Shown: positions 13,883 through 57,146 of the stretch, in pieces
Layout: every line of letters begins with the position of its first letter
Numbering within the stretch: position 1 is the first letter of the stretch
NCBI RefSeq assembly: GCF_963506605.1
Contig: NC_083291.1
Coordinates: 24,428,001 to 24,492,000 of the forward strand
Direction: 5' to 3'
Length of the DNA: 64,000 nt
Source: Zootoca vivipara
Taxonomy: Eukaryota
The notes under the pieces: model-generated
Databases searched by the model: none
The model's input: the letters and a program-made list of their open reading frames with translations, nothing else
What the model was told of the DNA's origin: nothing
Translations under genes and position numbers: made by a program

Positions 13883-16231
13883 GAAGGAATGGAAACCCCC
13901 TCTCTGATATTGACTAACCTGATTTCTGAAGGCAGGGACAACTACTGGTAGGTGAAAGATTGGTTGGCTTAGTCAATATGCTTGTATGGGAGAAGGCAGT
14001 TCTTCATTACCCTGTCCTAGACCTTTTAGATCTTTGTAAACTAAATCTAGCACTCTGAAGTATTGCCAGAAGTTAATGAATATCTAAAGTGAATCTGTAG
14101 ATAGGCAGGGAAAGATTGCTGTCTAAAGTCCTGGAGAGCCACTGTCAGTGCATGTGTAGACAACAGAGCTAGATAGACCAATGGTCTGACTCTGTATAAG
14201 ACACTTCCTTATGTCCCTAGAGACCCTCAATGTTTCTGCAGCTGGAGTAACGTCCACATCAGTTCTTTTTACCTCACACCAGTACTTTCCTGATTATTTC
14301 CTTGCATCATAACAATGTGCACCCATTCCTCTATTTTTACATTGTTTTCCCAGAGTCCTCTGGCCTATTTAGAGTACTTCTCCCTGCCCCATATGACGAC
14401 CCTATGTCTACAGTCGAAGTAAATTTTGCCTATGAAGCCAATTCTAGCTGTCCACGTTTAGGTTTGTAGCTTGTTTTCTGAACAGGGTTGAATTGCTATT
14501 ATATGGCAAGTTAGTTAGAGGTCCCCTGAGCTAATGTTATAACTGCTAGAAGGAAAGTCTGTATGTACTGATAAAAATAATTGTCAGCTTCCTGTTTTGA
14601 ACTGTGCATTCTATTGCTATGGCATATTTTGTCTGGGCCACTTGACCAGGACATTCCTTTAACAGAAGAGGCTCCTCTGTAGAGTTTATTATGACAGTGC
14701 TCAAGGTGAGATGATTCATGGGAGCACAGAGCATAGTTTTCTGGATTATTATTTTTTGCTATTATTAAAAGAGGCAGCTGGTTAAAATGTAAAATATGGG
14801 ACATTTTCAGGTATACCATATGAACTCCATATATAGATACTTGCATGAATGAATGCTGGAGTGGTCTGGTTCACCAGCTGCATCCCCCCCCTCTCCCATT
14901 CAACAGAAATGTACATATAAGAAGGTGCTATTTTGTATTACTATGTTTGACTGTATTCATCTTTTCTCTAAAAATTAAAATGATAAATATAAAAATTGAA
15001 AATGTCAAGTGGAGACAAAATTCTAAATAGTATAAACTTTTCCCGCTCACCTAAATACAGAATGGTGGTACTACAACATAGATGTGGCTTTCACAGATGG
15101 TGCATGACAGCTGAGTTGTGCACATGGGCAACAATACAAATCTGTTTCCTCACCCTATGTGAATGTTTGAAGTCAGAGTATTAAAAATACATTTTGATCG
15201 GTATAAGTGTACTGCAGGGGAGTTCTGTCTGTTAAATAGGAATCGCCCATCGTAAGGTAGTTTCCCAAGTATTTCGTGGTATGAAATGGGGGGTCTGCTA
15301 TTGGCAAGATAGTGTCAAAAATTCCACTGAGGATATGTAAGCTTTGATCATTTCTAATTTAGCTCTCTCTAGTTCAGGCTTCAGTTTCTCTCCTTCCCCC
15401 CACCCTTGGCAGCCATCCCCACCCACCCCTCTGCATAACTTTGCTTATGTTGTTCTAAAATCCCCATTCTCCTGTACGGGAGAAATGTGATCCTGCGTGG
15501 GTTGTCACCACCCATCTCACCACTGGTTATAAAGTATTTCTGTACCACCATCATAAAATATCAGTGTTGTGTACAACATAAAGACATAAAATACCATTAA
15601 AACAAGACAAATAATAATTTAAGCGATTAAACTACTGGGTAATCAAAACTTTATACAACTACTGTTATAAGAACAACCTTCAAGAGACACCTGAAAGTCA
15701 AAAGTAAGAGTGCCTGCTGAATCTCTTGGAAGAGTGTTCCACAGCAAATCTTATCCGTATTGGATATAACTGGGGGGGAACTGCTCATTCTGCTACACCC
15801 AAGTCCCTCCCTCCTTTCTGCAAAATGCCTGCAACAGGGGGTGCTTTGAAATAGCAAAGGGGGACTACTGCACTTTCTCCCTCAAACTTAATTGCCTCTC
15901 CCCTCCTTTATCTCTGCCAGAATTCTCACTCACTTTCAAGCCACTAATGTGAATATATCACTAATGTGAATATATGTGAACAGACAGTAAAATAACTTTT
16001 GAAGTGCGTTGAAATGAAAGCAACTGTTTTGTAGCACCTCACAGGTTTATATGTCATAAGCTTTTGCATACCCAGAGTCCATTTCATCGCAGTCATAAAT
16101 TGGTAACACTTCTGATGTACCGTACCGGTAATTTGTCACCACAAGAACTCTTTTTCCTCTTTTCACCTGACTTGTTCATAAATATTTGTCCTGTCTGGCT
16201 TTGTTTCATGAACCAAATTCATAGGAGGAGG

Positions 16232-16636
16232 GAACGGGGGAGGTTGGGGAAGCCCTTAAACAATGTTTATGTATAATTAATGATTATAATAGTTTTGTTT
16301 TTTGTTTTTCTTTGTTTTTTCTTTGTTCTTTTTCTTTTGGGGGGGTTCTTCTTTTTTGTGTAAAGTTAACAAGATGTGTTTGGACAGATAGTTGGGTGGA
16401 CACCCTCCTTCATTTTCCCTTGTCATTCTAGAGCTTCCTGGTGGCAGGAGGGGGCTCTGGGGAGGAGAAGAGGGGGGAGGGGACAAACCCAATTATAAAA
16501 TGGACCGCCTTCGACTGTCCACTTTGCATGGGACTCTCTCGTGGCAGGAGGGGGCCCGTGGGGGGTAGAAGAAGGGGGATAATATGTTATGTATGTCTTG
16601 TTTTAATGTGTATAATCAATAAAAAATATTATTAAA
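16232..16636 (+). mobile_element. 5'-truncated non-LTR retrotransposon 3' UTR (L1-like)
   Basis: 17-bp TSD AAATTCATAGGAGGAGG (16215-16231 / 16637-16653). Ends with AATAAA and an A-rich tail. Confidence 0.7.
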
Positions 16637-18623
16637 AAATTCATAGGAGGAGGAGTGACCGCACAAATCAGAGCATTTTTTGAGTTTTTCCATTTTTGTA
16701 GTTTTTTGCTGGGGGGGGGGGGTCAAAATTCCATGGTTGGGAATCAATTAGAAATAGGAAATTGTCAACTTGTTATGTGAATGCTTGCCTAACAGATTAT
16801 TTCCAGGGAAAGCATTGTTTTGGGAAGCCAGATCTGCATGTACTGACCTAGATGGTCCATTGATCAGACTCACTATAAAACAGCTTTCTATGTAAGTCTT
16901 CAGAGCAGAGCTAATCTGGCTACAAAATAAGTATCAAATGTAACAAGGAACTTGCTTAATCATAAGGGGGAAGTGGAAGGCACCATCCCAAACTGTGGAA
17001 TGCCCACCAGGAACCACTGGGGAACTAGTTTCCTGTAGCCTGAATGTGAAAAATGTTAAGTATTCTAAATGGAAAGCTGTAACATTGACTTATAAATAAG
17101 GTGGAACCACGCTCCTTTAAAGACAGCAGTCAGGATCTAGAGAACATGGAAAGTGGCTTGCTGCATTCAGGGGGGCTTTGGACATCTGTTTCTTAAATTG
17201 CAGCCCTCCTTGTTGCACTTCAAGCTTTGTTCCTAATATTGAGGGGACTTGCAAAAGCAGCTTGTGATACGGCATGATGGGAATAAGCTGTTTGAAGAAA
17301 AACGAGGCCAAAATCCCACTGGGCATGTGCAAGCTCTTGGGCTTGCCAGAAGCAGTTTGTTGTGTCCCCATATATTTTGTGCAGCCATGACAGGAACTGT
17401 GCTCCAGTAGCTGTGGTAAAGCCAGCTAGTTTGCTAGCGAGATGGCTCAGGCTTCAAATGATGTGAACTGGCTGTAGTCCATGAACAAACAACATCCAGA
17501 GGCCAAGTACTGGGTAGGGCTGGACATGTTTTTACTGAATGCAGAATAGTGGCTTCATAACAGAACACTGTTTTTCCATACTTCGTGCTGATCAGGGAGG
17601 AAAAGGAGGGGGGAAAGAGCAGTGATGTAGGGAAGGGAAGGAAAAGGGAACTCCAAACCAAAAGAATTTCTGTGGCATAATATGACTAGTAGCAATTGCT
17701 GCGGGACATTCTACAAGCTATTTTTTTCCAGCTTCATGGGCTAGCAGTGGCATTTCAAGTGTATGGGTGGAAGAAAGCATGAAGGGCTCTTTTAAAACAT
17801 CATGTTCCTTTTCCTCTTCAACAGTTTGGTTGAAATAGTTTTTTTTTAATACTTGAAATTAAATGCAGTTGAAGAAAACAAAAATGCACACCAAATGAAA
17901 GCCAAGCTTTGAGAGAGAGACTGCTCAACTGGAAAACTCTCAGGGCAGTGTACATAATAAAATTATTAATTCATAAAATCATCAAAGCTGTTCACAAGTA
18001 TACATAAAATAATTATCAACAAAATATGGATAAAATCAGAAAATCTTTTAAAAACAATATAGATGACATTATATGTCTGGGTAGGTTTTCTGAAATAAAC
18101 AGGTTTTCAGCAGGGATTTAAACCATTTAGTGAGGGTGCCTATATAGGAAGTGTCTGTAAAGCAAACATTATTTTAGGTTTTGAGAGGAAGGATACTGTA
18201 CTTGGAAGAATGTTCTGGTAAAATCTGTTAAGCACTGCAGTCTGTATAATTTTCAGTGTGTTGGGAGTGTAAGCTTTCATGTTACAGGGAAATTCTTGCC
18301 GGGCATAAGTATTCAAAGCAAGAAGAGTGGCTTATAGCGTCTAGATTTAAACATGTTTATACAATTTGAAAGCTTATGACATTAGGTGGTCCAGGAAAAG
18401 ACCACCTCATTTACACTATGGTATTGGGGAAACCAGCATGGACACAAAACTGTGGCCTCTAGAAGTAGATTGTCACATATGTAGTGTTAAGGATATGACA
18501 GTCTAAATACTTGGCTTTAAATAATACCTTGGCAACAGATTCAGTTCAAAGAAGCCATATCAATGACCGACTGGCTATGTTTTGCCTCATGTTGATGGCT
18601 TTGGGGTTTGCTGTTCTGTAGTT

Positions 18624-18644
18624 TTGTGTGTGTGTGTGTGTGTG

Positions 18645-18693: not shown

Positions 18694-18694
<1 letters not shown>

Positions 18695-22745: not shown

Positions 22746-23495
22746 ATGGAGAGTCCAAGGGTATTGGAGCCCTTCCAGCCATCAGAGCCCCACACGTGGG
22801 AAGACTACGTCGAACGCTTCGAGTTCTTTGCAGTGGCTCAAGGGATCACCGATGCCAGCAAAAGAAGGGCCACATTCCTGAGCTACTGTGGGCCCGAGAC
22901 CTTCAAGCTGGCCAAGGCATTGCTTGCTCCAGCGAAGCTGAGTGAAACATCTCTCAAAGATATTCTTGCCTGCCTAACGAGCCACTTGGCGCCTACTGAG
23001 ACCAAGATAGCCCGGCGGATGGAGTTCCATAAGAGGCAGCAGCGTGCTGGGGAGTCTGTATCCACATTTCTGGCTGAGCTCCGGAAGCTCGCTCAGCACT
23101 GCGGCTTCCAAAATCTGGAAGAGACTCTCCTGGATCGGTTTATTGGGGGTCTGAGCAGCAAGAAAGCCAGAAGACGCATCGTGGCTAAAGAAGAGGTTAC
23201 CCTTGCTTCAGCCTTGAAGGAGGCCACCGCCACGGAGAATTATGAAAGAGAGGAGCTTGATGCCAGTCGCAAGGCCACTAAGCCACAGATAGAAGTTGCA
23301 CATGCCATGGATGAGCTAGAGGCTACTCCGAGCCAGAGCCCAGTCCGTGGGGTCGAGTCGGTGCGTCAGGCCTGCACAGTGCACAAAGATCGCCGAGGCA
23401 GTTGCCCAGGTTGTGGCGGAAACCATGAGCGGAAGAGTTGTCGTTTCAGGGTTGCTCTTGAATTACGGTTTGGCATTTTATCTGGGTGGACATAA
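22746..23495 (+). CDS. gag: Gag, C-terminally truncated
   Basis: WEDYVERFEFF...FHKRQQRAGESVSTFLAELRKLAQHCGF...DRFIGG, plus one zinc knuckle CPGCGGNHERKSC. The stop codon lies inside the inverted insert. Confidence 0.9.
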   Translation: MESPRVLEPFQPSEPHTWEDYVERFEFFAVAQGITDASKRRATFLSYCGPETFKLAKALLAPAKLSETSLKDILACLTSHLAPTETKIARRMEFHKRQQRAGESVSTFLAELRKLAQHCGFQNLEETLLDRFIGGLSSKKARRRIVAKEEVTLASALKEATATENYEREELDASRKATKPQIEVAHAMDELEATPSQSPVRGVESVRQACTVHKDRRGSCPGCGGNHERKSCRFRVALELRFGILSGWT

Positions 23496-31476: not shown

Positions 31477-31570
31477 GTATCTGAAGAAGTGTGCATGCAC
31501 ACAAAAGCTCATACCAATGACAAACTTAGTTGGTCTCTAAGGTGCTACTGGAAGGAATTTTTTTTATTCT
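31477..31570. mobile_element. Penelope-like short fragment
   Basis: CTGAAGAAGTGTGCATGCAC...AAAGCTCATACC...TTGGTCTCTAAGGTGCTACTGG, the same family as 38810-38980. The family name is from recall of reptile Penelope-like ends. Confidence 0.55.
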
Positions 31571-33585
31571 GTTGTCTTAGTTAAAGAAACAATATATATG
31601 ATTCTTGGTTTGTTTTTTAGAGCAATCTGTTGAGCAAATCTGTTATTTTGTAATGTTTGAGTGCTCAGTCTTTTGACCCTATGCTATATCTATATACATT
31701 TTCATTCTATTAAAATCAAGGGAAACATCCAAGCCTTTAAGTCAAATTGGGCAACTTGCTTTAAAAAAATCTATCCCCTTTCAACTCTCCCCATTGTGTG
31801 TTGGTGGTGGTGTTTGCACTTCACTGCTTTTGATCTGTCGTCAGTGTTGTATCCTCATGAGTTTTGTATTGGTGCCTCTTTCGGAGGGGGCAGCCACAGC
31901 CACCACTACTTATTTGCATAAAATAATGTCACTGTGAAAATTGCTGATTAAAAAATTGCTGATTAATTAGCCTTGAGGTTGAGCTTTAAAAATGCAGCTG
32001 GGAAGCGAATATAGCAGCCAAAGTACTTTGAAAAATAGACAGGCATACTATTGTCAGCCAAAGTGATTGGCTGATCCTAGCTCAGTGGAGGAAAGTATTG
32101 CAAGAAGAGAAATGGAAAAGTGTCTTTCTCTTCTCTTCAGTCTGACCCCCCTCTTTTTATAAGACCCTGCATGAAAGTGGCCTCCCTAACTCTTCCCCAC
32201 TGGCTCACATGGGACCAGCGCAGATAGTTGGGCCTAGTGAGCACTTAGTGCTCCCAACCCATATAGTTGTGACTTGTGGGTTGCCATCTGTTTTTATTCT
32301 GATCTTAATCTGATTTTAAGCTGTATTTTAATCAATTGTTTGACTTGTTTGGTGTATTGTACCGGTATATTTTGATGTTCGCTGCCCTGAGCCCGGTCCT
32401 GGCCGGGGAGGGTGGGGTATAAGTAATTATTATTATTATTATTACTCTCCTGTGATTTTACTAGTACCCTCATTTTTGGAGTCAAATGTGACTGTTTTGA
32501 ATTATTTTCAATTGGCCATTTATATGTATATTTAATTTAATAGCACAATGGTAATGGCTCCCAGTTGGTTTGACAGCACTTATATCTTACACCAGGTCTT
32601 GGGCACCACTCAAGCTGAAGTCCAGGTTGCCACCCCTCTGGTCAGTACCAGGACCACTGTTCTAGGGCACAGTCACTTAAGATACATAGAACTTCACTTA
32701 AGATACATAGAACTTTTATCTCTTAGTCAGTGTTGGAACACACATGTAGCCAGTCCATGTGCAGCTAGTTAAAGGCTCCCATTACTACAACATTTCCTCT
32801 TTTGGATGCTTCATTGATTTCAGCTTTCATCTCAAGATCTCTGAGCATTTTGATACCATGTTCACATTAATAATTTTTTGGGACCTGGTATCACTGCCCA
32901 CAACAATTTTATGGAGGAATATTCCCCTTTTAGAATTTCTGGCTTACTGGCCTTAGTGTCCTTTCTGACATACAGAGCAACATCACCTCCAGTGAGTCCT
33001 TGCTGTAGAGTTCTCTCCATTCTACCAGATTTCTGTTATGCCCATTATATCAATGCTGTCCTGCAAAACTAAATACTCCCATTTATGGCTCTGTTGGTTC
33101 TTGGGTTCACAGAAGAAAGCCAGTCTAGGACCATGTAACACCCCCCATACCCTATTTATAATAGGTTAGAACTCATAAAAGCATCAACAATAGGATCTAA
33201 TTTAAAGAGTAAAATACTTTTAAATGTGACTTGGATTCCCCCCCCCCAAAATCTATGGTTCTTAGATTGGTTATTGTTTTGTAGAATGAACCTTAAAGCT
33301 TGTTGGAATCGATATTGGCCATATTACCCTAGTGTCTTTCTGATGCACCTACCCAACAAGGGAAAGTGTCTCTTTCAAAATAATTTTTTGAAAGGAATAT
33401 AAATAGCTTTGGGAATCTTTGCCTGTCAAAATGTTGTGCTAGGCTTAGCAACAGTTGCTAATCTAGGTCCACCCAATGAGAAAATAAATTCTGAAATTGG
33501 CCTGCCAGCCACATCTAGATAGTAATTACTATAAAAGCAGATGGGTTTCTTTGCCTTCCCATTAAGACAGTTTGCCCTATGTTTA

Positions 33586-36500
33586 CCGTGTTTCTCATAT
33601 TTTAAGGCATCCCCAAAAAATAAGCCATGACAGGATTTCTAAGGGTTGGTGAAAAATAAGACATACCCCGAAAATAAGCCATGTCGTGTAGCCCCGACCG
33701 AGCGAGAGGCGAAGGCGCGGGACCCAGCAGGAGCTCCCTGCCTGCTTCCCCGAGCCGTCGCGCATCGGGGGACAGAGCCGAAGATCGGAGGGCGCTCCTT
33801 GCTGGGCTTGACAAGCCCGGCAAACAGCGCCCGCCGATCTTCGGACCTGTGCTGTGTGACAGGCAGGGGTGGGGGGAAGCGGAGATCGTTCTCCGCTCTC
33901 CCCCCACCCCCGCCTGTCACCAAAGATCGGCGGGCGCTCCTTGCTGGGCTTGACAAGCCCGGCAAACAGCGCCCGCCGATCTTCGGACCTGTCCTGTGTG
34001 ACAGGCGGGGGTGGGGGGGGAAGCGGAGATCGTTCTCCGCTCTCCCCCCACCCCCGCCTGTCACCAAAGATCGGCGGGCGCTGTTTGCTGGGCTTGACAA
34101 GCCCGGCAAACAGCGCCCGCCGATCTTCGGACCTGTCCTGTGTGACAGGCGGGGGTGGGGGGGAAGCGGAGATCGTTCTCCGCTCTCCCCCCACCCCCGC
34201 CTGTCACCAAAGATCGGCGGGCACTGTTTGCTGGGCTTGACAAGCCCGGCAAACAGCGCCCGCCGATCTTCGGACCTGTCCTGTGTGACAGGTGGGGGTG
34301 GGGGGGGGAAGCGGAGATCGTTCTCTGCTCTCCGCCCACCCCCGCCTGTCACCGAAGATCGGCGGGCGCTCCTAGCTGGGCTTGACAAGCCCGGCAAACA
34401 GCGCCCGCCGATCTTCGGCCCTGTGCTGTGTGACAGGCGGGGGTGGGCGAGAAGCGGAGATCGTTCTCCGCTCTCCCCCCACCCCCGCCTGTCACCAAAG
34501 ATCGGCGGGCGCTCCTTGCTGGGCTTGACAAGCCCGGCAAACAGCGCCCGCCGACCTGTGCTGTGTGACAGGCGGGGGTGGGGGAGAAGCGGAGATCGTT
34601 CTCCGCTCTCCGCCCACCCCCGCCTGTCACCAAAGATCGGCGGGCGCTCCTTGCTGGGCTTGACAAGCCCGGCAAACAGCACCCGCCGACCTGTGCTGTG
34701 TGACAGGCGGGGGTGGGGGAGAAGCGGAGATCGTTCTCCGCTCTCCCCCCACCCCCGCCTGTCACCAAAGATCGGCGGGCACTGTTTGCTGGGCTTGACA
34801 AGCCCGGCAAACAGCGCCCGCCGATCTTCGGACCTGTCCTGTGTGACAGGTGGGGGTGGGGGGGGAAGCGGAGATCGTTCTCTGCTCTCCGCCCACCCCC
34901 GCCTGTCACCGAAGATCGGCGGGCGCTCCTAGCTGGGCTTGACAAGCCCGGCAAACAGCGCCCGCCGATCTTCGGCCCTGTGCTGTGTGACAGGCGGGGG
35001 TGGGCGAGAAGCGGAGATCGTTCTCCGCTCTCCCCCCACCCCCGCCTGTCACCAAAGATCGGCGGGCGCTCCTTGCTGGGCTTGACAAGCCCGGCAAACA
35101 GCGCCCGCCGACCTGTGCTGTGTGACAGGCGGGGGTGGGGGAGAAGCGGAGATCGTTCTCCGCTCTCCGCCCACCCCCGCCTGTCACCAAAGATCGGCGG
35201 GCGCTCCTTGCTGGGCTTGACAAGCCCGGCAAACAGCACCCGCCGACCTGTGCTGTGTGACAGGCGGGGGTGGGGGGGGAAGCGGAGATCGTTCTCTGCT
35301 CTCCGCCCACCCCCGCCTGTCACCGAAGATCGGCGGGCGCTCCTAGCTGGGCTTGACAAGCCCGGCAAACAGCGCCCGCCGATCTTCGGCCCTGTGCTGT
35401 GTGACAGGCGGGGGTGGGCGAGAAGCGGAGATCGTTCTCCGCTCTCCCCCCACCCCCGCCTGTCACCAAAGATCGGCGGGCGCTCCTTGCTGGGCTTGAC
35501 AAGCCCGGCAAACAGCGCCCGCCGATCTTCGGACCTGTCCTGTGTGACAGGCGGGGGTGGGGGGGAAGCGGAGATCGTGCTCCGCTCTCCCCCCACCCCC
35601 GCCTGTCACCAAAGATCGGCGGGCGCTCCTTGCTGGGCTTGACAAGCCCGGCAAACAGCGCCCGCCGATCTTCGGACCTGTCCTGTGTGACAGGCGGGGG
35701 TGGGGGGGGAAGCGGAGATCGTTCTCCGCTCTCCCCCCACCCCCGCCTGTCACCAAAGATCGGCGGGCGCTCCTTGCTGGGCTTGACAAGCCCGGCAAAC
35801 AGCGCCCGCCGATCTTCGGACCTGTCCTGTGTGACAGGCGGGGGTGGGGGGGAAGCGGAGATCGTTCTCCGCTCTCCCCCCACCCCCGCCTGTCACCAAA
35901 GATCGGCGGGCGCTCCTAGCTGGGCTTGACAAGCCCGGCAAACAGCGCCCGCCGACCTGTGCTGTGTGACAGGCGGGGGTGGGGGGGAAGCGGAGATCGT
36001 TCTCCGCTCTCCGCCCACCCCCGCCTGTCACCGAAGATCGGCGGGCGCTGTTTGCTGGGCTTGACAAGCCCGGCAAACAGCGCCTGCCGATCTTCGGACC
36101 TGTCCTGTGTGACAGGCGGGGGTGGGGGGGAAGCGGAGATCGTTCTCCGCTCTCCCCCCACCCCCGCCTGTCACCAAAGATCGGCGGGCGCTCCTTGCTG
36201 GGCTTGACAAGCCCGGCAAACAGCGCCCGCCGATCTTCGGACCTGTCCTGTGTGACAGGGGGGGTGGGGGGGAAGCGGAGATCGTGCTCCGCTCTCCCCC
36301 CACCCCCGCCTGTCACCAAAGATCGGCGGGCGCTGTTTGCTGGGCTTGACAAGCCCGGCAAACAGCGCCCGCCGATCTTCGGCCCTGTGCTGTGTGACAG
36401 GCGGGGGTGGGGGAGAAGCGGAGATCGTTCTCCGCTCTCCCCCCATCCCCGCCTGTCACCGAAGATCGGCGGGCGCTCCTTGCTGGGCTTGACAAGCCCG

Positions 36501-36619
36501 GCAAACAGCGCCCGCGTGCACTTTATTAAAAAATAAGACATCCCTCAAAAATAAGCCATGTCGTGTTTTTTTGAAGAAAAAATTAATATAAGACATGACT
36601 TATAATATGAGAAACACGG
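33586..36619. mobile_element. TA-flanked MITE (CCGTGTTTCTCATAT ends; pogo/Tigger-like) carrying a satellite
   Basis: TA|CCGTGTTTCTCATATT...AATATGAGAAACACGG|TA, subterminal AAAATAAGCC/AAAATAAGAC motifs. Same ends as the 235-bp copy at 49478. Confidence 0.92.
33778..36514. repeat. GC-rich tandem repeat, ~143-bp unit (135-bp variant), about 19-20 copies
   Basis: GGGCTTGACAAGCCC recurs 20 times from 33804 to about 36485 at 135-145 bp spacing. Each unit is made of two hairpins. Confidence 0.97.
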
Positions 36620-37129
36620 TATTTAATCAGTTGCCTAATCAGATTGGTAGGATGTTCTGGTGTTTTGAAGGGACAATGGGCGTGAGGCAGGTTTTGGGGG
36701 GCTAAACAGAGCTGGGGGTTTGCTCTCTTGAATTCTGGATTTATCACTCTAAGCAGCTCTCATTGTCGCACTGTCAAGGTCTCTCTTTCTCTCTCCCCCT
36801 CCCCCTCCTTTCATATTTATTGTAAAGACTGATAATTACCCGTGTTATTAACCTTTTTTAAAAATCGGTTTTTGAGACTTAAGGCAGGGTTTAGTGCTTC
36901 CTCCGCTTAGATTTCAACCCTCGCCTCGTAAGGCAAAACGTTCATGTACTCTGGTTCTATGTTTCCCGTCAGCCGCCTCCTGCCTGCTCAGAAAACAGGC
37001 CACGAAGGAAGCAACCCTCGTTGTTCGTCTTCCAGCAGCTGTTAACTCAAAGCTACTGTATACTGCTGTCGACGTGGAGGCTCCATCTGGAAGAAGGGGA
37101 ACTACTGTACTTGCAGCCCAAGCAGAAGG

Positions 37130-38774: not shown

Positions 38775-38980
38775 TACATGTGTGTTACAGCTGTGTTGGC
38801 CTGGTGTAGTCGAAACAAAATTTTAAAAAATCCTTCCAGTAGCACCTTAAAGACCAACTAAATTTGTCATTGGTATGAGCTTTCGTGTGCATGCACGCTT
38901 CTTCACACGAAAGCTCATACCAATGACAAACTTACCGTAGTTGGTCTCTAAGGTGCTACTGCAAAGAATTTTTTATTTTG
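38775..38980. mobile_element. Palindromic Penelope-like insertion
   Basis: Head-to-head inverted arms (CCAGTAGCACCTTA.AGACCAAC / GTTGGTCTCTAAGGTGCTACTG). Flanked by the 12-bp direct repeat ATTAGAATCAGT (38763 / 38981). Confidence 0.65.
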
Positions 38981-40680: not shown

Positions 40681-43600
40681 TATATACACTAAGTCTATAC
40701 CTTTATAAATATTTTACTTTTTACCTATACACTAGCTCACTCTTTGAAGTATATTGTGGCCCATTGTGAGAAAAATTGATGCTTTTCTGTTCTATATGCA
40801 TTGTTTTATTGTTTAAAATGCATACATGCAAGTCCTTGCACCTGGAAAGAAATTCTAGTTGAGTACTTTTAGAATAGTAGAAATAAAAGTGTACACTAAA
40901 TATGTGTACATAAATATATATTTGTGAGGAAGAGGGGTTATTTGAGGCATAATATCTTTAGATATCCAGAACTCTCTTTAAAAGCTTATGAACTGCTGAA
41001 CCTATTTTTAAAAAAAAGCATGTGTGGTATCCAGTGGTTCACCGTCCCCTCTGCAGTCTTCCCATCCCATCCCCCTCTGTCTGGAGCCTCATGCAAGACA
41101 TACCTGTGCAAATTTGGCCAATCCCCCACACAGACTTCATGACAGAGCCCATTCTGTTCAGATGAGTCCTCAGAGAAGGAGGGGAGAGAAACATTGGTTC
41201 TGTGAGGAGTCTTCCATTCACACAATTGTTGGATACAACCCCATGTAATTAAGAACATGTTGGGATTTTAATTAAAACTTTTTTTTCCTGTACTTGGGAA
41301 TGTATAACCACGTCCAACAAATATTTTTGTTCATTCATTTTTTTAACTACCACTACTTGTTCGGGGTTTCTTCATCTGTGAAAAACTTAATTCAAAAAAA
41401 CCTGGCACCCATGTCAGGTCCGTGCAGTTCACATATATCCTGCTAACTGCCTGTCCTATATACACCTGGAGACCTGGAAACTACCGGTAGCTATTTGAAG
41501 AGTTTAACTCCTATTGTATTTATCCAATATTATAACAGAACAAAAGGCTGTATTCAGTGAAGTCCTGTGAGTGTAAGAACTTCCTCTCTCATTTCTTTGT
41601 GTGGCCTTGCACATACCGTAAAATCTGTTCTGGGGTTCCCCAACCCTCCAGAGCAGGGTTGTTGTTTTTTGGAGGGCACACAAGGAGATGAAGAGGAAGT
41701 ACAGTACTGTTACGCAGGTACTGTGTTGGATGCAGTATATTTTTTAGTCAATTTGAGTTGTACAGATTAACGGATTACAGTAAATTATTGGAGGGACGTT
41801 TTCTTGCACTGTTCTTGCATTTGAAAACAAAAACTGTATCGCCTCAAATATTTTTATTTTCTCACACTTCCGACTCACAACTTTTCCATAAACAAGTAAA
41901 ATACATTAGATATGCCAGAATGATACATATCTGGAGATTGGTTGAGTAACACATAACCTTTAAGCTATGAAAGACCTCCTAGGTGGCCAACTTTAATAGC
42001 ATTTAGACAAGCCCCAGCCAGAGGAAAACATAAAATTGAATGTGTAAATTAGAGTGATCATATCATTCTGTTGCTGAAGCTTAAGACATCTTGCCAGAAA
42101 GATCTAACCAATGATCAATACCATAATATGTGAGCTTTTCTAGTGCCATATCTCCTGTATTTCTAAGATGAAATCACTTTAGGGAAGAAACTGACTGGTG
42201 CCTAATGTGTTTTGTAGCAGCCTTAATCTGATATCTAAAGTTGACAGTTTATTTAAAGTTTGATTTAAAAATAAATAAATAGATCAAAAATATTTAAATT
42301 GCTTAGAAAAATCAATTTTCTAGTGATTTGCCATTTTCTTAACAAGGTTGTTATAAGTACTGGTTTGCAGCTAAATCGAGTTCCAAAAACAACGAAGTAT
42401 AATCCAAAATCTTTTGAACATATAGTCCATGTACCTTTGAAGAATTACCTTATTTGAGACATTTTGAAGTCATACAAGGACACTACACAAGATCCCTTAC
42501 TGTAATATTTCAAATAGGATTGCCACGTAAGGAGGATCTAAGACAGCACGAGCATCTGGACCAAAAATAATTCTTAAGCAAATGCCACAGCTGCGTATAT
42601 TGTCACAAGTATTCTGGCTCTAAGGATTGCTGTTGATGATAAAGTTGGAAAAATGTCTTTGTGGCCCACTAAATTGCAGCATATGACCAAGGTGGATAGG
42701 AAATCTGAATTAGACCAATTGGGGGAAAACATATATGGAACAATTGCTTGTTTATGTTACTGATTTAGAAGTATTTAATGATGAAATGTTTGGGCTACAT
42801 GGGGCTGCCTTTTTTAAAAAAATATTTTTATTGAAGGTTTTCTCAGTTTACAAAGACGTGTACAATGTCTCTCATAACATTTTTACAGATCAGTTTCAAT
42901 TGTTGAGACATTGGGGAGGAAAAGGGGGGAGAATGGGGCTGCCTTTTTAAAGGTAGTCTGGAAACTGTTTGGTTCCAACGTACAATCACCAGTTGCTAGT
43001 AGGGGCAAGGAGCTTTGATGTATGTTATACAAATTCTGCATCAATTACATTGGTTGCCAATATGTTTCCAAAATTAATTTTAAATTGCTTATGCTACCCT
43101 TTTAAAGTCCCCAAAGGCCTAGAAACAGTGTACAAAGGACCAACTGCACACACATGAACCTACCCAGACTGAGCTTCAGAGGCCCTGCTGTCTGTTCCAT
43201 TGCTAGTGAAGGTTAGGTTGGCAAGTGAAAGAGACACAACCTTTTAATTGGTGACTGCGCTATGAAAGTCTTTTCCCCAGGTGCTCCATCAAGCTCTCTT
43301 CCACTCTTTAGGTACATGCTTATATTCCAAAACACCACTATGGGGTGCTTTTATGTTGATTTTATACCTAATCCTGTTGTTTTTAAATTTTGTGTTTATA
43401 TGTTTGAAATATTAATTGTTCTTTCTTTAACAAATAACTGATGATAAAATTGCTGCTTTGGAAACATACAAAAAGGTTGTAAAGCCTGCAAATTATTTAA
43501 TGTGTGTCTCTCATATGTGGTCTAAATTGCAAAATATTCTGTTTGGACATATGGTGTGCAAAAAAAGGATGTCCTGAGCCTGCACTAATACACCATTCTG

Positions 43601-46139
43601 TAGAGGTAAAATTGTAACTTGTATTGATCTTTATTCTTGCAATCAGTAATTTCTTGATCAGATCTAATTTGGCTTCTAAGAAGTTATGATTTCTAGTGTA
43701 AAGGAGACAGCTTTTCTGAGTCTTATGGTGGTATTTTGAGTAATTCCATTCCAGTTCCTAAATATGCAGAATTTCTAGTTTAATATTTGGTGCACCTTCT
43801 TAGGTAATGTACTAGAGAAAAAGAAATAAAAGAAATAATGTTTAGCCTAAGGTTTTTCCAGTACCAGTAGCAAGGAGGTAATACCTGGCACAGAATGAAA
43901 ACATGACAATTTGGTGGCTGAAGAAAGAGTTGCTTTATCTCCTGTCTTCCTGCTACTTTTTTTCTCCTCCTTGTGTGTGTCTTGCATGCACACACACACT
44001 TTTTATAATACAGTATTTTGGCATTGCTGTTTTTCATACAATGATAGAGGTGGGCCACATTTTTAGAAGTCAGTAGTATATAGGGATAGGTGCTTCAATG
44101 GGTAGCTGGGAGAAAGCTGAAGTTAGACGACTGTGTGTGGTGTAGCATTTATGCCACAAAGCATTGCATAATTGCCATATTTTTCTGTTAATAAAACAAG
44201 CATTGTGTTTTTTTAATTATTACAAAGTCTCTAAAATCTGTAGAAACAAAATATTCACAAATAAGATGGATTTCATCAAGAGGTTGTGTGCCGCACAAGA
44301 GAAGCAAGAGTGCATTTTTGCTCCAACGTCTTTTCTGGTGATGCAATTATTTGTGTATATTAAGTCTTCATGGAGAAAGTAGGTTGACCTAGAGCACTTA
44401 CTGTGTGCCATTACTAACTCAATATTAGTTTGCGTAAGCATTGTGTTCACACCAGTGTTTGGAAATGACTTGGGGGAGGGGAGTGGATAGTGTGTGCAGT
44501 TCTGGTTGAAAATATTGCACTCTAAAGACTAATTTCTTTTTGGCTTGACAGTATTGAAAATCTTTAATAGGGGGCTGCAGCCATAGAAGTAAGGCATTGT
44601 TTGTGTCCTTGTAGGGAGTAGGGAAGCACAACCAAGGGCATAAGTAGGACTGGATTGTTTGACTTTTATAGTATCCGCTGCACTATCAGGCAGTTGGGAG
44701 AGCGAGAGAGAGAGAGACAACAGCGCAAGTAGCACCCAGCTGTTCTGGTGCACAGTGATTTGTTCCCTTCATAAATATTGTGTCTGTTAAAAGCTTTAGC
44801 TGTTTAAATACATGGGTTTTAATGGTGCAGGACGTGGGCTTAAGGTGGGTTTATTAATGGTTGATGTTTGGAATGGGTCAGATTTTGTTTAGTAGCAAAG
44901 CAGATTTTAAGTTTGGAGTGAGGGAGAGCTTGGCTTAGAAACAAGTGAAATTCTTGAATTCCTTTCTGTTACTGCAAATGAAGTGTTACCACTGGGGTGT
45001 TCCAATTTCCCCCCTGAATTGGAGACTTTGATTTAGAATTTAAAAGCTGTCAGCATCCAGCACTTAATACACAATAGCATGGAGTGTGTAGATGCCCTAA
45101 ATATGGTAATTTGCAGTGAGTTTATTGTATATAATCATAAAAGAAACTTTGGTAAAACTAATCTTACTATTTCTCGATATAGATTTTTCCCATGGTTGAA
45201 TTTAAGCTTTGTTGTTAATAGTATGATAGGTTGTGAGGAACTGATTATTGGAAATATATCAGTGCCTCCAGACAGAGCTAGCATAAATTAAATGATGAAG
45301 TGTCTCACTTCCGCTGGGGAATGGTTTGTGCACATTCTCTGATGAATGCTAAGGGTTGTTGGTTTTTTTAACCGATTTTAATTTGGATATTTCTTCTTAC
45401 AAAGAAATTCATACGAATGTGGTGATGATGTCAGTGCTTGTACAGTGAATGTCTGATGTTGCTGCAATTTTAAGCAAACTTTCCTAGGAGCAAGTCCCAC
45501 TGAACTTAGGTATAATACATAATATTGTGCTATACATGAGCTATAAGTTTTACTATTTTATGGTCTTGTAGCTTTGAGAAAGTACCGTAACTTAGATGAA
45601 ATTTGTTCACAAAGCCAGTATGTGAAAAATGAGGGGGGAAGTTGTGGACCCAAGTGCTGATTTGCATGCAACAGGAAGCCAGCACTCTGTTTTCTTTCCT
45701 TCTGGCACAACAGAGGGGTTGGCATTCATTTGAGAAGTGTGCACCAGGATCCTTGTTCCCAGAAAGCCAAGTTTATTTAATTGTAGCTTTTCGTTAATTT
45801 GTGAACAGCTCAGTTTTCACACCTAGGCAGTATGAACCACAGAGCCGGAAATTCTTGGGCAACCAGGAACTTGAAGTAGTATCTGAGCTGTGCCAGTAGA
45901 GGAGCGTTTCCAATAGCATATATGAAACTTGAGCATTTTCTCATGCTTTGATAAAGTAGACTGAAGATAGTAGTCACCCAGCTTATCAGATTTGCAGTAT
46001 GAGACTATGCTCTCCCTACCCCTTTCTGTTGCCTTTCCTCACCTCATTTTAAATAAATAAATAAATGGTGGAACTGTTACTGTAACTATCCACAGGTCAG
46101 GATGCAACCCATTTGTGGGTCTCAGCCCCACTAATATTT

Positions 46140-46500
46140 ATTTATTTATTGCCCAGCCTTTACTGTAAGGTCCTAGGGTAGGTGACAACATCAAAACACA
46201 ATATTAAAAGCAGTTTAAAACAAGTTACGATCATCAAAATAAGGTGGGTCCTTAAAATATACATCCCAAGTTTCAAAAGCCAGGGTTAAAGAGGTGTGTC
46301 TTCAGCTTTCTGCAGAAGCTGTATAATGAAGGGGCCAGATGGACCTCTGTGGGGAGTGAGTTCCACAGCTTGTTGGCCACTACAGAGAATGCCCTCTCCC
46401 AGGCTGCCAGCCCCCAAGCCTCTTGACGGAGGAGGAACTACTGAGGGCTGCCTCTGCTAATCTCAGCAACCTAGGGGAGGGGGTAGTCTTTCAGATTTGG
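46140..46500 (-). mobile_element. L2-like LINE 3' fragment
   Basis: (TTTA)n tail, then GTTCCACAG...GGCCACTACAGAGAATGCCCT (reverse of the AFSVVA..LWN motif). Confidence 0.55.
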
Positions 46501-47208
46501 GGGCCCACTTGAATATGAATAAGGGCTGTATTAATGGCATCCCACATATGGTAGTCACCACAAAGTCATCATTTACAGGTACATAACTGTATATTAACCT
46601 AAAGGTGGGTAGTGTTCTGTTTCCATAATTTGTGTATTTGTCTTTTAAGCTGCACTGACCTGTCAAAGATAATATCTTTCAGATAAATGAAAACTGTATT
46701 TAAATACGTACATCTTAGATACTGTAAATACTATATGTATTAGAAAAGTACCGGTAACTGTAAGGGATATATTAAAGCTAGCTCAGCAGTGTAAATCACA
46801 TACCTAGTGGGTGTTGAGTGTACTTGTTGAGCTGCAACTCCATCTGTCTGTAGCTCCTTTAAGAATCCACAAACCTAGAGCCTATTGACATGAAAGTTGT
46901 GCTTAAGCAAGCATATTTCAAAATGGGTATACCGTAACCCTTATTCCCTTGTAACAATTCTCAGTTTGTACTCTGTTCTCTTCATTTTCCCCAGACATAA
47001 GAGAAAAAGTTTAGAGAGAATATGAGCAATAAACTACAATATTACCGAAGTTGTGAAACATCGAGACATTTAATCTCCAATTTGTTCTTTGGAAATGTAT
47101 AATGCCTAGTTCATTTCTTTCTTTCGGAAATGATTGTCCTAATAAATGATGATCTAAGTTACCCATTACTTTTTGATTTATTTATTTTATTACTCCTTTG
47201 CCCCACAG

Positions 47209-48366: not shown

Positions 48367-49477
48367 GCCACAACCCTTTGATGTAGGTTAGGCTGAGAAA
48401 TAACAAATGGGCCAAGGTCATTCCGTGAATTCATAGATGATAAAGGAATTGAACCCGCATCTCCATGATCAAAGCCCACCACTTTAAGAATGATCCTGTG
48501 GTAGAAGCAGTTTTAGATTGCCCCAGGCTGACTTTTCCGTGCACTGTAATGGGCTTAAAAGATTACATGAAATCTATCCTGTGCTGAGCTCATGTCATGT
48601 CCTACAGCATTGGTGAAGTTTCATGTAACTTTTGTGTCTTTGATGTGAAAGCCAGTCTTGGGCTGACCAATAACTGGCTATCATTGTTGTTTATAATTTA
48701 ATATATTTATATGCTGGTTTTAGGATGACTCTCAAAAATGGCTTACATGAAAATAAGTATCAATTAAAGCCATATAATAAAACAGGAAAGAATAATACTT
48801 TTTTGAAAGCTAGATTTCTCCTCTGAAGAGAAGGTGGTCCTTAGGTAGTCCTGTCTAATATTGGAGAAGGAAAGCTCACCTCAGCTGGAATTTGGGAGCT
48901 ATGAGGAGAGGAAGAAAGCAGTGAGAGGAAGTCTCAAAAAGAAGACTTTTAAAAGTCATGTGAATGAACCCAGAGCTTTGGAACACTTCTTGCTTGACAG
49001 TAAATTCCTCTTACCTACTATCAAGTTGTCCAATAATATGCATTAAGATTGCAGTGTGGAAGAAAAACCACCACATTTACATGATGGTCACGGAAAAGTT
49101 TGTCAGTTGGCAGCAGTCATCACAGGAAGAGTTAGTTACATAACTTCCAACTCATGTGATAAGTTCCGCTTGACCTTCATTACTGTTAACTCTGAATTTC
49201 AGGGAGAAAGGCGCTAGGTGATCGCTTTGGTATTATTATTTGGTTGGAAACTACAGATGATTGTAATCCATATTTTCTTATAGCTGCCAAGTTTTTTTAA
49301 GCAACTGCTATTTGCCTTCCGGTATTCTGTTTTCTTGATAAGGAAAATGATGTTAAGTGTTTACAGATCCATCCGATTTACATAAATTTTGGAATGCAGA
49401 AAGAAAATTACAAGTTTGAAGTTCATAGTCCATCCTTGAACAAAGGAGCTTCAGGGGGATTAACACTACATGTATTA

Positions 49478-49712
49478 CCGTGTTTCTCATATTATAAGAC
49501 ATGTCTTATATTTATTTTTTCCTCAAAAAAACACACTATGGCTTATTTTCAAGGGATGTCTTATTTTTTTCCTCCTCCTTCTGCCGTGGCCGGCATTGCT
49601 GCTACGCCTATCACTATGTCTTATTTTCGGGGTATGGCTTATATTCCTTGAATGCTTAAAAATCCTGCTATGGCTTATTTTATGGGTATGTCTTAAAATA
49701 TGAGAAACAGGG
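49478..49712. mobile_element. Short (235-bp) copy of the CCGTGTTTCTCATAT MITE
   Basis: TA|CCGTGTTTCTCATATTATAAGAC...AATATGAGAAACAGGG|TA. Opposite orientation to 33586-36619. Confidence 0.9.
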
Positions 49713-50039
49713 TAATTGGCTTGCTAATGCCAGGACTTCTGTGTCATCAACTACTGTTTGTGTGAATAGCCACTGTTAATTAAAACCATTATCACTGGCT
49801 GTACTTTTCTGCATTTCATATCCTTCTGACCTCTGATTATAATCCTTTCCCCTGCATACAGTCACGTGTATATGTACTAGCAACTCAGATTAACATTTCA
49901 TGCAGCTGATGGAATAGTCCAAGAAAGCTTATGCCATAATAAAAGTGTACATCTTTAAGGGGCCACAAGATTCTTTGTTTAATCTAGAAGGGAAAGGTGT
50001 GTAAAAATAAATAAATTTGTCCAATTTGATTATTTGCAG

Positions 50040-51210: not shown

Positions 51211-51507
<297 letters not shown>

Positions 51508-52159: not shown

Positions 52160-53370
52160 GTAGGTATCTTTTAAAAAGCAAAACAAAAAAAACCTTACTT
52201 CCTCTAGTAGTTGGTTCTGGAACAGTGGATTTAAGGTGGGATGTGTTGGTTGGCTGCCTGGAAAAGGAGCCAAAATCTTTCAGCCAAAAATCATGAAAAC
52301 CTTTCAAGTTAGAGCAAAGCTTCTAGTATAGAAGTCTGTGAACTGCAAATTCTGATCTACGAGCTGAAAGCCGTAGCTGCTTTAATTTCCAGTCTGCTAG
52401 AAAAGCAGAAGCAAAATGGAATCTGAGTGTTTTCCAGCACTAGTTTCAGAGAAACTGAACTACAGAGAAAAAAGCTGGAGCTCTTACTATTTCGAATGGC
52501 CGTGTTCCTTTTTAAGCCTTAAGTGCATCTAGAGATTGAGAGCTTTTTTGAAAGATGGCATTTCATATTTGCAGTCCATGGTGTGTGTTAAATTTCTTTA
52601 CATCCCATACTATTAACCATTGTTATACGGCACACATAGTATTTGAGAGGTTCAGATGGGCTTTTTAATCTCATTTGTGGAAAAACGGTCTCCTGGTGCT
52701 TCCAAAAAGGTATTCGAACTGAAACTCAAAGCAGATCTATAGGGGATTCTATAATTGTGAGACAGTTGCTGATAATTTCTCTCTGAAGGAAAAGTGGGCT
52801 ATGTAGAATGGAATGAATGGTGATATAGACCTCTCTGTCCTTCAGCACAGTGGGTGCCTGTTCCTTATCATTTTAGTTTTTCCTATCATCCAGAAATAGA
52901 AAAGTACAACTAATTTGGTTGATAAACTGCAATGAGAGTTAATGTAGGACAGGGTTTCACAAAATGGGATTGCCTGATCCCCTGCTTTCCCAGGGAAGGG
53001 GCATTGCATGTGCATAAAATTGGTGGGTCACCCTGTAACAATAGAAATCTGATGATAAGTAACCTGATAGGCAACCAGAGCAGCTCTTGAGTGGACTGAA
53101 TGTGCAACAAAATGTGGCCTTCTCAGCCTCCAGGTTTAAAAGTGGAGGCTAGCACACACTCAAAAAACACCCCACTCTGAAAGCCTCAAGCTAGGGATGT
53201 AAAAGGTCATTTTGCATTCTAAGCAACCAGAGTGTTACCACGTATACTGTAGATACAGATCCTGGAACAAATGAATGTTCTCGGTTACGTAGTAGCAGGA
53301 AAAAGTGGCACAAAATCATAACATTTGTACTGAAATAGGCAGCAAATATCTAATTACAATTTGATAAATA

Positions 53371-53780
53371 CAGTGGTACCTCGGTTTAAGTACACAATTG
53401 GTTCCGGAAGTCTGTATTTAACCTGAAGCGAACTTTCCCATTGAAAGTAATGGAAAGTGGATTAATCCATTCCAGACGGTCCACGGAGTACTTAAACTGA
53501 AGCGTACTTAACCTGAAGCGAACTTTCCCATTGAAAGTAATGGAAAGTGGATTAATCCGTAACAGATGGGTCCACGAAGTACTCAACCTGAAGCATGCTA
53601 ACCCGAAGTATGAGTGTAATTGGTTCTGGAAGTCCGTACTTAACCTGAAGCATACTTAACCTGAAGCGAACTTTCCCATTGAAAGTAATGGAAAGTGGAT
53701 TAATCTGTTCTAGGCGGGTCCGCGGAGTACTTAAACTGAAAGTACTGAAACCGAAGCGTCCTTAAACCGAGGTATGGCTG
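53371..53780. mobile_element. Tc1/mariner-superfamily MITE with internal triplication
   Basis: TA|CAGTGGTACCTCGGTTTAAG...CTTAAACCGAGGTATGGCTG|TA. The block AACCTGAAGCGAACTTTCCCATTGAAAGTAATGGAAAGTGGATTAATC occurs three times. Confidence 0.88.
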
Positions 53781-54000
53781 TACTCGGAACAGAGTTATTA
53801 AGCATGAGAAACTTGAATTTCTGACAAAATACACAGTGAAAACACACACCAATTGAAAAAAGTCATACTTCAGTGCAGTATGAATATGTTTTTACTGTGT
53901 AATATTGACTAGATAAACTTTGACAAATAACTATTCTTGGCAAATAACTGGTAAATTTTATGTTTCACAAATGTTCGTGCTTTTTTCCCCTCTCCCATAG

Positions 54001-54162: not shown

Positions 54163-54517
54163 GTAAGTGATGGCTTTCAGCATTTTGCTGTGATTTTCAC
54201 TACACATTTATTTCACATTATGATTCTACTAGCATGTTCTGAATTGTTTCCCTGCCCCCTTTGAACGTGCACATTTACTTATTTATTTACATTAACCTAA
54301 ACATGTGCAACTTGGAAACAGAAAATAATTGAGCCTTGGTTGGGTAGAGAGATGCTCTCGTGGGTGGAAGGAAGGGAAGGTGATACATGCCGATTTTTTA
54401 TTTTCAAAGCAGCTACCCCTATCCCCCCCCCAAAAAAAAATCAGCTCCAGAGGGTTGGGGGGAGGATGGGAGGAAGCACTGGGGACTGCTGGGGTGCTGT
54501 GGGAATCAGCAGAACTA

Positions 54518-55438
54518 CCGTATATACTGGCGTATTAGACGGCTTTTGAACCCAGGAATTTTTTTTCAAAAGTTCGGGGCCCGTCTTATACGCCGGGTCC
54601 AAGAATCTGCAGTCACCGCATACGGTGGGGGGAGCTCAAAAACGGCCGCATCCCCACTGTATGCAGTGACCCTATGAACGCAAAGAAGCGCGCTCGTGAG
54701 GGGGCTGCTCCCCGCCAGGGAGAATGGCTCCCTCATGGCTTTGTGACCTGGATCAGCGCAGAGATACAGTTTTGTGTATTTCATTGGTGTCAAGCTGCTG
54801 CCTCTTCTCTTTTTGTCAGCGCAAAGCAAAGGGATCTCTCTGTCTCTCTCTCTCTCTCTCCGCTCTCTCTTTCACTGCTGCTCAGCGTCTTTCGCTGGCT
54901 GTGTGAGCCTCCGATGTCTCTGCCCCTCTATCGCTATCCTCTCTATGGTTTCTTTCCCCCCCTTTTGCTCGATGTCTCTGCCTCCCTCTCCCTCTCCCTG
55001 GCTTCTATTCCCCTTTTGCTCACTGAGCCAGCCTCGTTGTCTCTCTCTCCGCTCTCTCTTTCACTGCTGCTCAGCGTCTTTCGCTGGCTGTGTGAGCCTC
55101 CGATGTCTCTGCCCCTCTATCGCTATCCTCTCTATGGTTTCTTTCCCCCCCTTTTGCTCGATGTCTCTGCCTCCCTCTCCCTCTCCCTCCTTTTGATCGA
55201 TGTCTCTGCTTCTCTATCTCTCCTCTCTCTGGCTTCTTTCCCCCTCTCAATAACTAAGCAAGCAAGCAAACAAACAAACCACCATTTCCCCGGCTGCAGA
55301 CTTGAGTGCTGGAGAAGACAGCCTCCCCTCCCCTCCCCGCCAAAAAAGGGCTGGAGTACATCCCAAATTCTATATTTTAATTTGAAAAGTAAGGGGTCGT
55401 CTTATACGCCCAGTCACCTTATACGCCAGCATATACGG
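54518..55438. mobile_element. TA-flanked MITE (CCGTATAT ends) with internal pyrimidine-rich duplication
   Basis: TA|CCGTATATACTGGCGTAT...ATACGCCAGCATATACGG|TA, subterminal CGTCTTATACG motifs. A ~150-bp block is duplicated with 189-bp period. Confidence 0.88.
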
Positions 55439-55742
55439 TAGCCCCCACCCCCAAGAGTGCCCAGTTTGCAGAACAGGATTCTTTACTAGATTTGACTTGG
55501 TTTCTAATCCACAAGTGGAAAAAACCCTCCTTTTCATAGATCAGCAGGTTTGAATCCAACTCTAGAATTGGGACCAGTCTAAACAGAAGTTTTTCATCAA
55601 ATTTCCGATAAGCCAGAAATGGAATTGTTTGGTTAAGGGAAGATTCACTGCGGTGAAAACGCTTCTGAAATGTAAAAGTATGACTTTTCCAGTGCCACCG
55701 TGGGCTGATGGACTGCTGAAATTTCCCCCCTGTTTGCATTAG

Positions 55743-55849
55743 CCTTACCCGCCTTTCATGCCTCGAAGACTCACAGGACGCAGCAGATATCGATCTCAAC
55801 AGCCAATACCGCCACCTCCTTACCATCCCAGCCTATTGCCATATGTGCT
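55743..55849 (+). CDS. RNF38: RNF38 coding exon (PYPPFMPRRLTGRSRYRSQQ...PYVL)
   Basis: Translated by hand (absent from the ORF track); TAG acceptor, GTAAGT donor. Confidence 0.95.
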
Positions 55850-57146
55850 GTAAGTCTCATTGTCTTTGTAGCTGTCCTTGGTAGCCTGGCTGTAGGAAGG
55901 ATAACACCGTTTTCTGAAAACAGCAGCCTAGAGTTGTCCCCCATAAAGGGCACCCTCTGCTTCAGTACAAGACAGGTTAAGGGAGACCTCAAATATTTTT
56001 ATTGGTAACTAGTGTGGATGCTGTAACATGATCCTAAGTGCTTCAAGTAAACAGAGCAATCCTATGAGAAGTTCTCCTACCCATCCCCATTATGATGAAC
56101 TGTGGCCTTACAAGAACAGCACTGCGTTTTCATGCTGCTCGCATTCATTGAAATGAGACTTGGAGAATTTTCTTGCTTTGTTTCCCTCCTCTGTACCCTG
56201 CAACAAATGAGAGCAGTCCCTGCCTCTCAGCCAAACCCTCTGGGTGTGCCAGAGGACTGAGAGGGTACAAGTAAACCAAGCCTTGGTTGTGGTACAATCT
56301 TCATATGAAGCATGTGGTCTGCCCTTCTCAGATGAATTATTGTGGGCCGAAACATGTTTAAACAAGGCTTTTAAATCCAATGCCAAACCATGGTTGAAAA
56401 ACATCATGGTTTGTACGCCAACAATAAACCATGACTTCACATCACGCTTTGTTTCCAGAAAACAAAACATGGTTAGTTTTCTGGGTTAGCCAAACTGGAC
56501 TTTGAATAAACAAACCATAGCTTGGCATTATGTGTGAATCAGGCCACTCTGTAAGCAGGTGGTATTATATGTTTTAATAGCTTCAGTGCTTCTGTACGTG
56601 AACCTGTGACAGAGAAATGTTTTTCCTTCTGCTGCCCAATTCACAATTACTTAGAGCCTGCCTGTGCCTTCTGAGGTATACCAGGTGCCTACTGAGTAAA
56701 GGGTCTTAATGGTGGTGGCACCTTGACTGGCAATGTTCTCTACAGGGAGGCTTGCTAAGCTCTTGTCATGTGATTTTGACACTAGGCAGAGGCACTTACG
56801 GTAGATTATTGTAATTTTAACCTTTTCTAAGCCAGCCTGGAACCCATTTAAAGGGCAACGCATCAATCAAATATCAAAATGAATAATAAGCTAAGTTAAA
56901 ATACATTTTAAAAAACACCTGTCCAGCTTGCCTCTCTGGAAGCATGGGCATGTGTGATCCAATGTGGAGAGCCAGCTTTATACAGATTAGTTAATAGCAT
57001 GACCTAGTACTGAATTGGAACCAAATTTGTATTTAAATTCTTGACCAGTTTTGAAAGCCTTTAGGCACAGACCCAAAATTAGCAGCTCTTTCTCTGTATG
57101 TGTACAAGTAGTAAATCATGATGCTAACTTCCTTTTTTTCCTGCAG

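Follow-up and report, generated by a model that had tools for sequence, protein, structure and literature searches.

Candidate excision scars of CCG-ended, TA-targeting transposable elements in a 64-kb stretch of the Zootoca vivipara genome

Introduction

Do short CpG-containing words that recur in a lizard chromosome mark the places from which transposable elements have departed? We address this question in a 64,000-nucleotide stretch of Zootoca vivipara DNA (assembly GCF_963506605.1, contig NC_083291.1, positions 24,428,001 to 24,492,000 of the forward strand; hereafter the window, numbered from its first letter). The words are TACCGTA, TACGGTA and the 8-mer TACCGGTA. In the Tc1/mariner superfamily, the transposase places its cut in the non-transferred strand a few nucleotides in from the element end, and end joining then leaves TA, two to four terminal nucleotides and TA (PMC6943129). 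An earlier note, drawn from the letters of this stretch, had proposed that the words are such excision footprints, left by elements that begin with CCG and end with CGG. That reading is supported by the enrichment of the words, by two empty sites and by CCG-ended, TA-flanked elements resident in the window. We conclude that most of the words are very probably donor-site scars of TA-targeting (Tc1/mariner/pogo-type) non-autonomous elements with CCG...CGG ends.

Results

Enrichment of the words

In a scan of the window, TACCGGTA starts at four positions (16123, 32360, 41482 and 46749). Outside intact elements, TACCGTA starts at 16118, 38933, 41614, 45583 and 46930, and TACGGTA at the single position 56797; all of these are exactly where the earlier note had placed them. 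The remaining copies, TACCGTA at 54516 and TACGGTA at 55434, are the left and right ends of an intact TA-flanked element (element B, described below) and had been correctly excluded in that note. All ten words outside intact elements fit a TA-x-TA form.

The window is CpG-depleted (observed/expected ratio 0.38), and Markov models of orders 1-4 predict 0.11-1.4 copies of each word per window. Against this background, TACCGGTA was observed 4 times versus 0.11-0.29 expected, TACCGTA 6 times (including 54516) versus 0.55-1.4 and TACGGTA twice (including 55434) versus 0.5-1.3. TACCGGTA ranks first in enrichment among the 256 TA-NNNN-TA words, as does TACCGTA among the 64 TA-NNN-TA words, and matched control words, in which CCGG has different A/T flanks, have 0-1 copies each. 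The three words combined amount to 10 copies outside intact elements (12 in total) versus approximately 1-2 expected. In 300 third-order Markov simulations, the three-word total averaged 1.1 and peaked at 6, short of the 10 observed, and no simulation contained four copies of TACCGGTA. The enrichment therefore holds within the window when set against a Markov background, a comparison that the earlier note had suggested for the genome as a whole.

The excess is word-specific. TACCG and CGGTA, the half-words, show no enrichment (18 each versus 12-18 expected), which assigns the excess to the symmetric whole word. Taken by themselves and with the two intact ends dropped, the 7-mers are marginal (6 versus 1.1-1.7); the statistics are carried by the 8-mer and by the combined count. 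Among one-mismatch neighbors of the 8-mer, the most enriched is the CpG-decay form TACTGGTA/TACCAGTA (6 versus 1.8 expected), the expected decay product of TACCGGTA, and this excess fits older scars. Flank-mutated neighbors of the 8-mer show no enrichment in the window. There is also no global excess of TA-NNN-TA or TA-NNNN-TA words, whose ratios of 1.13 and 1.24 are mid-range among the 16 dinucleotide classes, and the scar signal is thus restricted to particular words rather than extending to TA-framed words generally. The density of about one scar per 6 kb given in the earlier note stands as an upper bound and falls to approximately one per 8 kb once chance occurrences are subtracted. We note that the window may be a local hot spot for scars.

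Resident elements with matching ends

Three TA-flanked elements in the window, element A′, the miniature inverted-repeat transposable element (MITE) A and element B, start with CCG at the positions reported earlier (Table 1). Two of the three end with CGG, while MITE A ends with GGG. All three have terminal inverted repeats (TIRs) of 21-29 bp with a TA on both sides, and A and A′ have the TIR CCGTGTTTCTCATATT.TAAG in common. The inner letters of the scars are the terminal letters of these resident elements, as the published footprint rule for Tc1/mariner predicts (PMC6943129), and we count this agreement in form in favor of excision.

The 21-bp TIR of element B has exact matches in 25 metagenome contigs (L001-L025, JGI). 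Open reading frames (ORFs) on these contigs encode Forkhead, C2H2 zinc finger, GWT1 and reverse transcriptase sequences, which identifies the contigs as derived from an animal host; their CpG observed/expected ratio is 0.79. Across the 25 independent contigs, B-type TIR ends adjoin a TA at 34 of 38 ends. The metagenome MITEs that they bound are approximately 320-820 bp long, and their likeness to element B is confined to 25-50 bp at the termini, with an exceptional maximum of 88 bp. The B-type TIR therefore defines a widespread family with a firm TA target, and its occurrence in animal-host contigs indicates that related transposases have been active in distant animals. Neither an autonomous copy nor a transposase was found in the 25 contigs, the sole DDE_3 hint in these loci being below threshold and outside the TIR-bounded elements. 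The A-type TIR had no matches in the metagenome contig scan.

Empty sites at 38933 and 45583

At 38933, the comparison is with paralogues inside the window. The partner arm of the palindromic repeat (38806-38905, inverted) and a third copy (31475-31580) have a plain TA where this arm has TACCGTA. The paralogues read ...ACAAA(C/T)T-TA-GTTGGTCT..., and the 38933 arm has five extra letters (ACT/ATT-TA-GTT versus ACT-TACCGTA-GTT). An unbiased self-alignment of the window, from which the satellite was left out, contains no other 5-6 bp indel (14 gaps scored, with the scar counted twice). When the reconstructed empty sites were searched against the window by sensitive BLAST, a spanning match was returned for 38933 only.

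At 45583, the comparison is with other organisms. We used public runs of four relatives and aligned their contigs to positions 41300-47100, a region of which the relatives share 17-23% of 31-mers, implying a divergence of about 5%. Single-copy contigs from runs X5, X7 and X14, which represent organisms B, D and E, leave out five letters at place 45582 and read AAG-TA-ACT, compared to AAG-TACCGTA-ACT in the window. The alignment of the fourth relative (run X6) breaks at 45584, at the TA, and its intervening 187 letters are nearer to the length expected of the scar-less form (188) than of the scarred form (193). The relatives' contigs have a plain TA and no element at this site. With these four relatives as the comparison, we infer a gain of five letters in the source species. 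The single ancestral TA predicted in the earlier note is borne out at both sites where the empty state is readable: at 38933 from paralogues and at 45583 from the three relatives. Judged by contig depth in the relatives, the DNA around four of the five words between 41.3 and 47.1 kb is single-copy, which means that these words do not belong to the interior of a repeat; the exception is 41614.

Among the indels listed for this region, the other 5-bp difference is at 43843 (43843-43849, TAGCCTA), likewise a lineage-specific TA-NNN-TA word, where the letters are missing in all four relatives. Their absence leaves a plain TA in the relatives, and the core GCC matches no element seen in the window. 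The relatives' contigs also contain two blocks that are absent from the window, one of approximately 171 extra letters at 45607 and one of 105-147 letters at, or replacing, 43565-43607. The organism B contigs break inside the first of these blocks, in the way expected of a repeat.

Other candidate sites and elements

The remaining candidate sites are listed with the elements in Table 1.

Table 1. Candidate scars and intact TA-flanked elements in the window
Feature	Position	Strand	Remarks
Double scar TACCG-TACCGG-TA (13-mer)	16118..16130		TA-CCG-TA, then CCGG-TA
Candidate +6 scar TACCGGTA	32360..32367		Tail of an interspersed repeat; enrichment only
+5 scar TACCGTA	38933..38939		Arm 2 of a palindromic repeat; paralogue alignment
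Candidate +6 scar TACCGGTA	41482..41489		Single-copy DNA
Ambiguous TACCGTA	41614..41620		Adjoins high-copy repeat piece 41621-41656
Lineage-specific +5 scar TACCGTA	45583..45589		5 letters absent in relatives' contigs
Candidate +6 scar TACCGGTA	46749..46756		Single-copy DNA; single contigs of X5 and X6
Candidate +5 scar TACCGTA	46930..46936		181 bp from 46749; one X5 contig
Candidate +5 scar TACGGTA	56797..56803		Other mismatch-repair outcome; enrichment only
Element A′	33586-36619, 3034 bp; TA-flanked 33584..36621	+	CCG...CGG ends, satellite inside
MITE A	49478-49712, 235 bp; TA-flanked 49476..49714	+	TIR as A′; right end GGG
Element B	54518-55438, 921 bp; TA-flanked 54516..55440	+	TIR CCGTATATACTGGCGTAT.AG; subterminal CTTATACGCC repeats

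The 13-mer at 16118-16130 fits two rounds of insertion and excision, in which the second element would have entered the right-hand TA of the first scar; alternatively, it may derive from a 5-bp slippage duplication of TACCG. For the repeat tail that surrounds 32360, a search for further copies gave nothing that could be aligned. The word at 41614 is ambiguous: it could have arisen as a scar, as a word that happens to fall at the boundary of a repeat or as the end of a degraded element starting with CCGTA. The adjoining repeat piece has a depth of 80-170, with loose ends at 41621 and 41656. Ten ORFs that adjoin the scars had no exact match in the protein collection.

Five of the nine sites lie within 5.4 kb (P approximately 0.02 compared to TA-matched random placement, for an interval chosen post hoc). 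There are two close pairs, 41482/41614 at 132 bp and 46749/46930 at 181 bp, in addition to the double scar 16118/16123 at 5 bp; at least two pairs within 200 bp are expected with P of approximately 0.02 under the same random placement. The clustering suggests, and does not establish, either short-range re-insertion or a local hot spot.

A second set of ends is present in the window. Three TA-flanked MITEs (6927-7166, 11849-12095 and 53369-53782) have CAGTGGTACC... ends, and their predicted scars, TACAGTA and TACTGTA, occur 20 times versus 10-11 expected, with seven copies in the 41.3-47.1 kb region. We considered TACAGTA at 44009 as a lineage-specific scar and rejected it, as it differs from the relatives by substitutions and not in length.

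Several other features were recorded. TACCGGGTA at 5614-5622, a single occurrence, is possibly the scar of a CCG/GGG-ended element like the copy at 49478. A 365-bp TA-flanked segment at 6363-6731 has perfect 14-bp inverted ends (AGCTAAACCATGGC) and possibly represents another MITE family. The hairpin at 13050-13240 was considered as two abutting CCG ends and rejected, being a separate local hairpin. A Gypsy-type long terminal repeat retrotransposon occupies 22746-26229, with a gag-like ORF and a 960-amino-acid pol ORF that has reverse transcriptase, RNase H and integrase domains.

Discussion

Proposed origin of the two scar forms

The two lengths of scar could arise from a single set of element ends. 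An element would insert at a TA and duplicate it. On excision, the transposase cut in the transferred strand would coincide with the end of the element and that in the other strand would lie 3 nt further in, so that each flank left behind would consist of TA and a 3′ overhang of CCG. If the overhangs were joined in full register, the pairs would be C:G, C:C and G:C, and repair of the central mismatch would give either TACCGTA or TACGGTA and so add 5 bp net. If they were instead shifted by one nucleotide, they would meet through a perfect 2-bp CG/GC microhomology, and a fill-in of one nucleotide per strand would give TACCGGTA, a gain of 6 bp. CAG ends would be unable to use the shifted register, which would explain why the CCG family has an 8-mer beside its 7-mers. 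In this scheme we infer the cleavage stagger, the two joining registers, the class of transposase and the assignment of scars to elements.

Weighing the explanations

Several observations count against the excision reading. Individual support is available at two of the nine sites, and for the remaining seven the evidence is the enrichment. No site still occupied by an element, whether orthologous or polymorphic, was found among the sequences compared. At 41482 and 41614, no indel common to three relatives is among those listed, so these words either predate the divergence of the species or have another origin than excision, and 41614 in addition lies at a repeat boundary. The orientation split of five TACCGTA to one TACGGTA departs from the expected 1:1, within sampling error. 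The scar excess is absent from the 25 contigs with the B-type TIR (8 versus approximately 6, and 2 versus 0.6). The window contains no transposase ORF, and the elements are assigned to the superfamily from their TA duplication together with the footprint's form. Finally, most differences from the source species are common to the four relatives, and the shorter form at 45583 may have arisen on their branch through a TA-to-TA microhomology deletion.

Three other explanations were weighed. Some of the words may be the outermost letters of degraded or truncated elements that start with CCGTA, or chance words at repeat boundaries. The intact ends of element B do spell TACCGTA and TACGGTA, since B-type TIRs begin with CCGTA directly after the TA, and most copies of the scar words in the metagenome contigs are element ends. 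The word at 41614, beside its high-copy repeat piece, is followed by CCGTAAAATCTG, which loosely resembles CCGTATATACTG of element B. We nevertheless consider this origin unlikely: the additions at 38933 and 45583 are clean 5-bp gains with colinear flanks, TACCGGTA cannot arise from an element end, and no TIR-like sequence follows the other words.

A different objection concerns polarity at 45583, and also at 43843, where the longer form might be ancestral and the ancestor of the relatives might have lost 5 bp by slippage between TA repeats. The relatives share most substitutions and the insertion of approximately 171 letters at 45607, and may therefore form one clade, in which case a change in either direction would be one event. 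Such a loss would leave unexplained that the missing letters are the terminal CCG of resident elements, as well as the excess of words across the window, and at 38933 the paralogue consensus polarizes the change as an insertion; we regard reversed polarity as very unlikely. It is extremely improbable that the pattern reflects chance acting on uneven CpG content, or an artefact of assembly or polishing. The CpG-rich satellite does distort k-mer expectations, and without the intact ends the 7-mers alone show the marginal enrichment noted above. However, the satellite raises the expectation rather than lowering it, no simulation reached the observed total, and independent tests were passed at both 38933 and 45583. 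Of the 31-mers sampled from 41300-47100, a fraction of 0.98-0.99 is also present in independent assemblies of the source species, so that assembly artefacts could account for no more than one or two of the five scars there.

With excision preferred as the origin of most of the words, we put forward a broader and more tentative conjecture, which we hold to be possible but doubtful: that, in this lineage, a few TA-targeting MITE families with CCG and perhaps CAG ends have left more scars than they have resident copies, and that these scars make up most lineage-specific 5-6 bp insertions, with the tight pairs being the short-range re-insertion trails of individual hopping elements.

If a genome-wide count agrees with that in the window, the scars would provide a direct tally of germline excisions, beyond the insertions that survive, which is rare for a vertebrate DNA transposon family. 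Such a tally would allow excision to be estimated relative to retention, bursts to be dated by the CpG decay of their scars and local hopping to be tested. It would also measure the contribution of cut-and-paste transposition to small indels and new CpGs, and the scars would serve as clean presence/absence markers between close species, as at 45583.

Comparison with known systems

The closest experimental parallel is Sleeping Beauty, whose footprint is TACAGTA or TACTGTA and arises from 3-nt 3′ overhangs with a central mismatch (PMC6943129). Like Sleeping Beauty and Tc1 footprints, the 7-mers consist of TA, three terminal nucleotides and TA, a gain of 5 bp, and for CCG ends the exact counterparts of the Sleeping Beauty words are TACCGTA and TACGGTA. 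The triplet differs, however: in CCG, unlike CAG, the last two letters are self-complementary, which would permit the +6 register proposed above. Moreover, the Sleeping Beauty footprints are experimental products, whereas those described here are fixed germline scars.

Fossil footprints of Stowaway MITEs have been found at TA sites in Triticeae introns by comparison of species, including a case of re-insertion beside an older scar (PMC1925063). The double scar at 16118-16130 would be a parallel to this second use of one TA. The Stowaway footprints come from plants, at one locus across many taxa, and are variable remnants of 1-4 bp, whereas ours occupy several sites in one animal window and take two stereotyped forms. 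In Arabidopsis, Emigrant MITEs and the pogo-like Lemi1 are TA-flanked and have empty sites with extra nucleotides that match the TIR ends (PMC1636448). Emigrant resembles element B in having a TIR together with subterminal repeats of the inner TIR half, as in the CTTATACGCC repeats of B. The two have no sequence relationship, and no partner transposase was identified in the window.

Among lizards, Anolis carolinensis has 17 non-autonomous TA-flanked families, TcMar-N1 to N17, that are abundant, in some cases young, and without an autonomous partner (PMC3014272); footprints go unmentioned in that survey of DNA transposons (PMC3014272). Compared by description rather than by consensus sequence, elements of this type could produce scars like ours in a lizard genome. 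Literature searches with the sequence strings themselves returned unrelated primer matches only. The earlier note had called these scars an overlooked source of variation, which holds for this lineage only, as fossil scars of Tc1/mariner type have been described in plants (PMC1925063, PMC1636448). The chemistry is thus not new; what the evidence supports as new is a specific CCG-ended family whose scars take two stereotyped forms in the genome of an animal, with a density of approximately one per 6-8 kb in the window.

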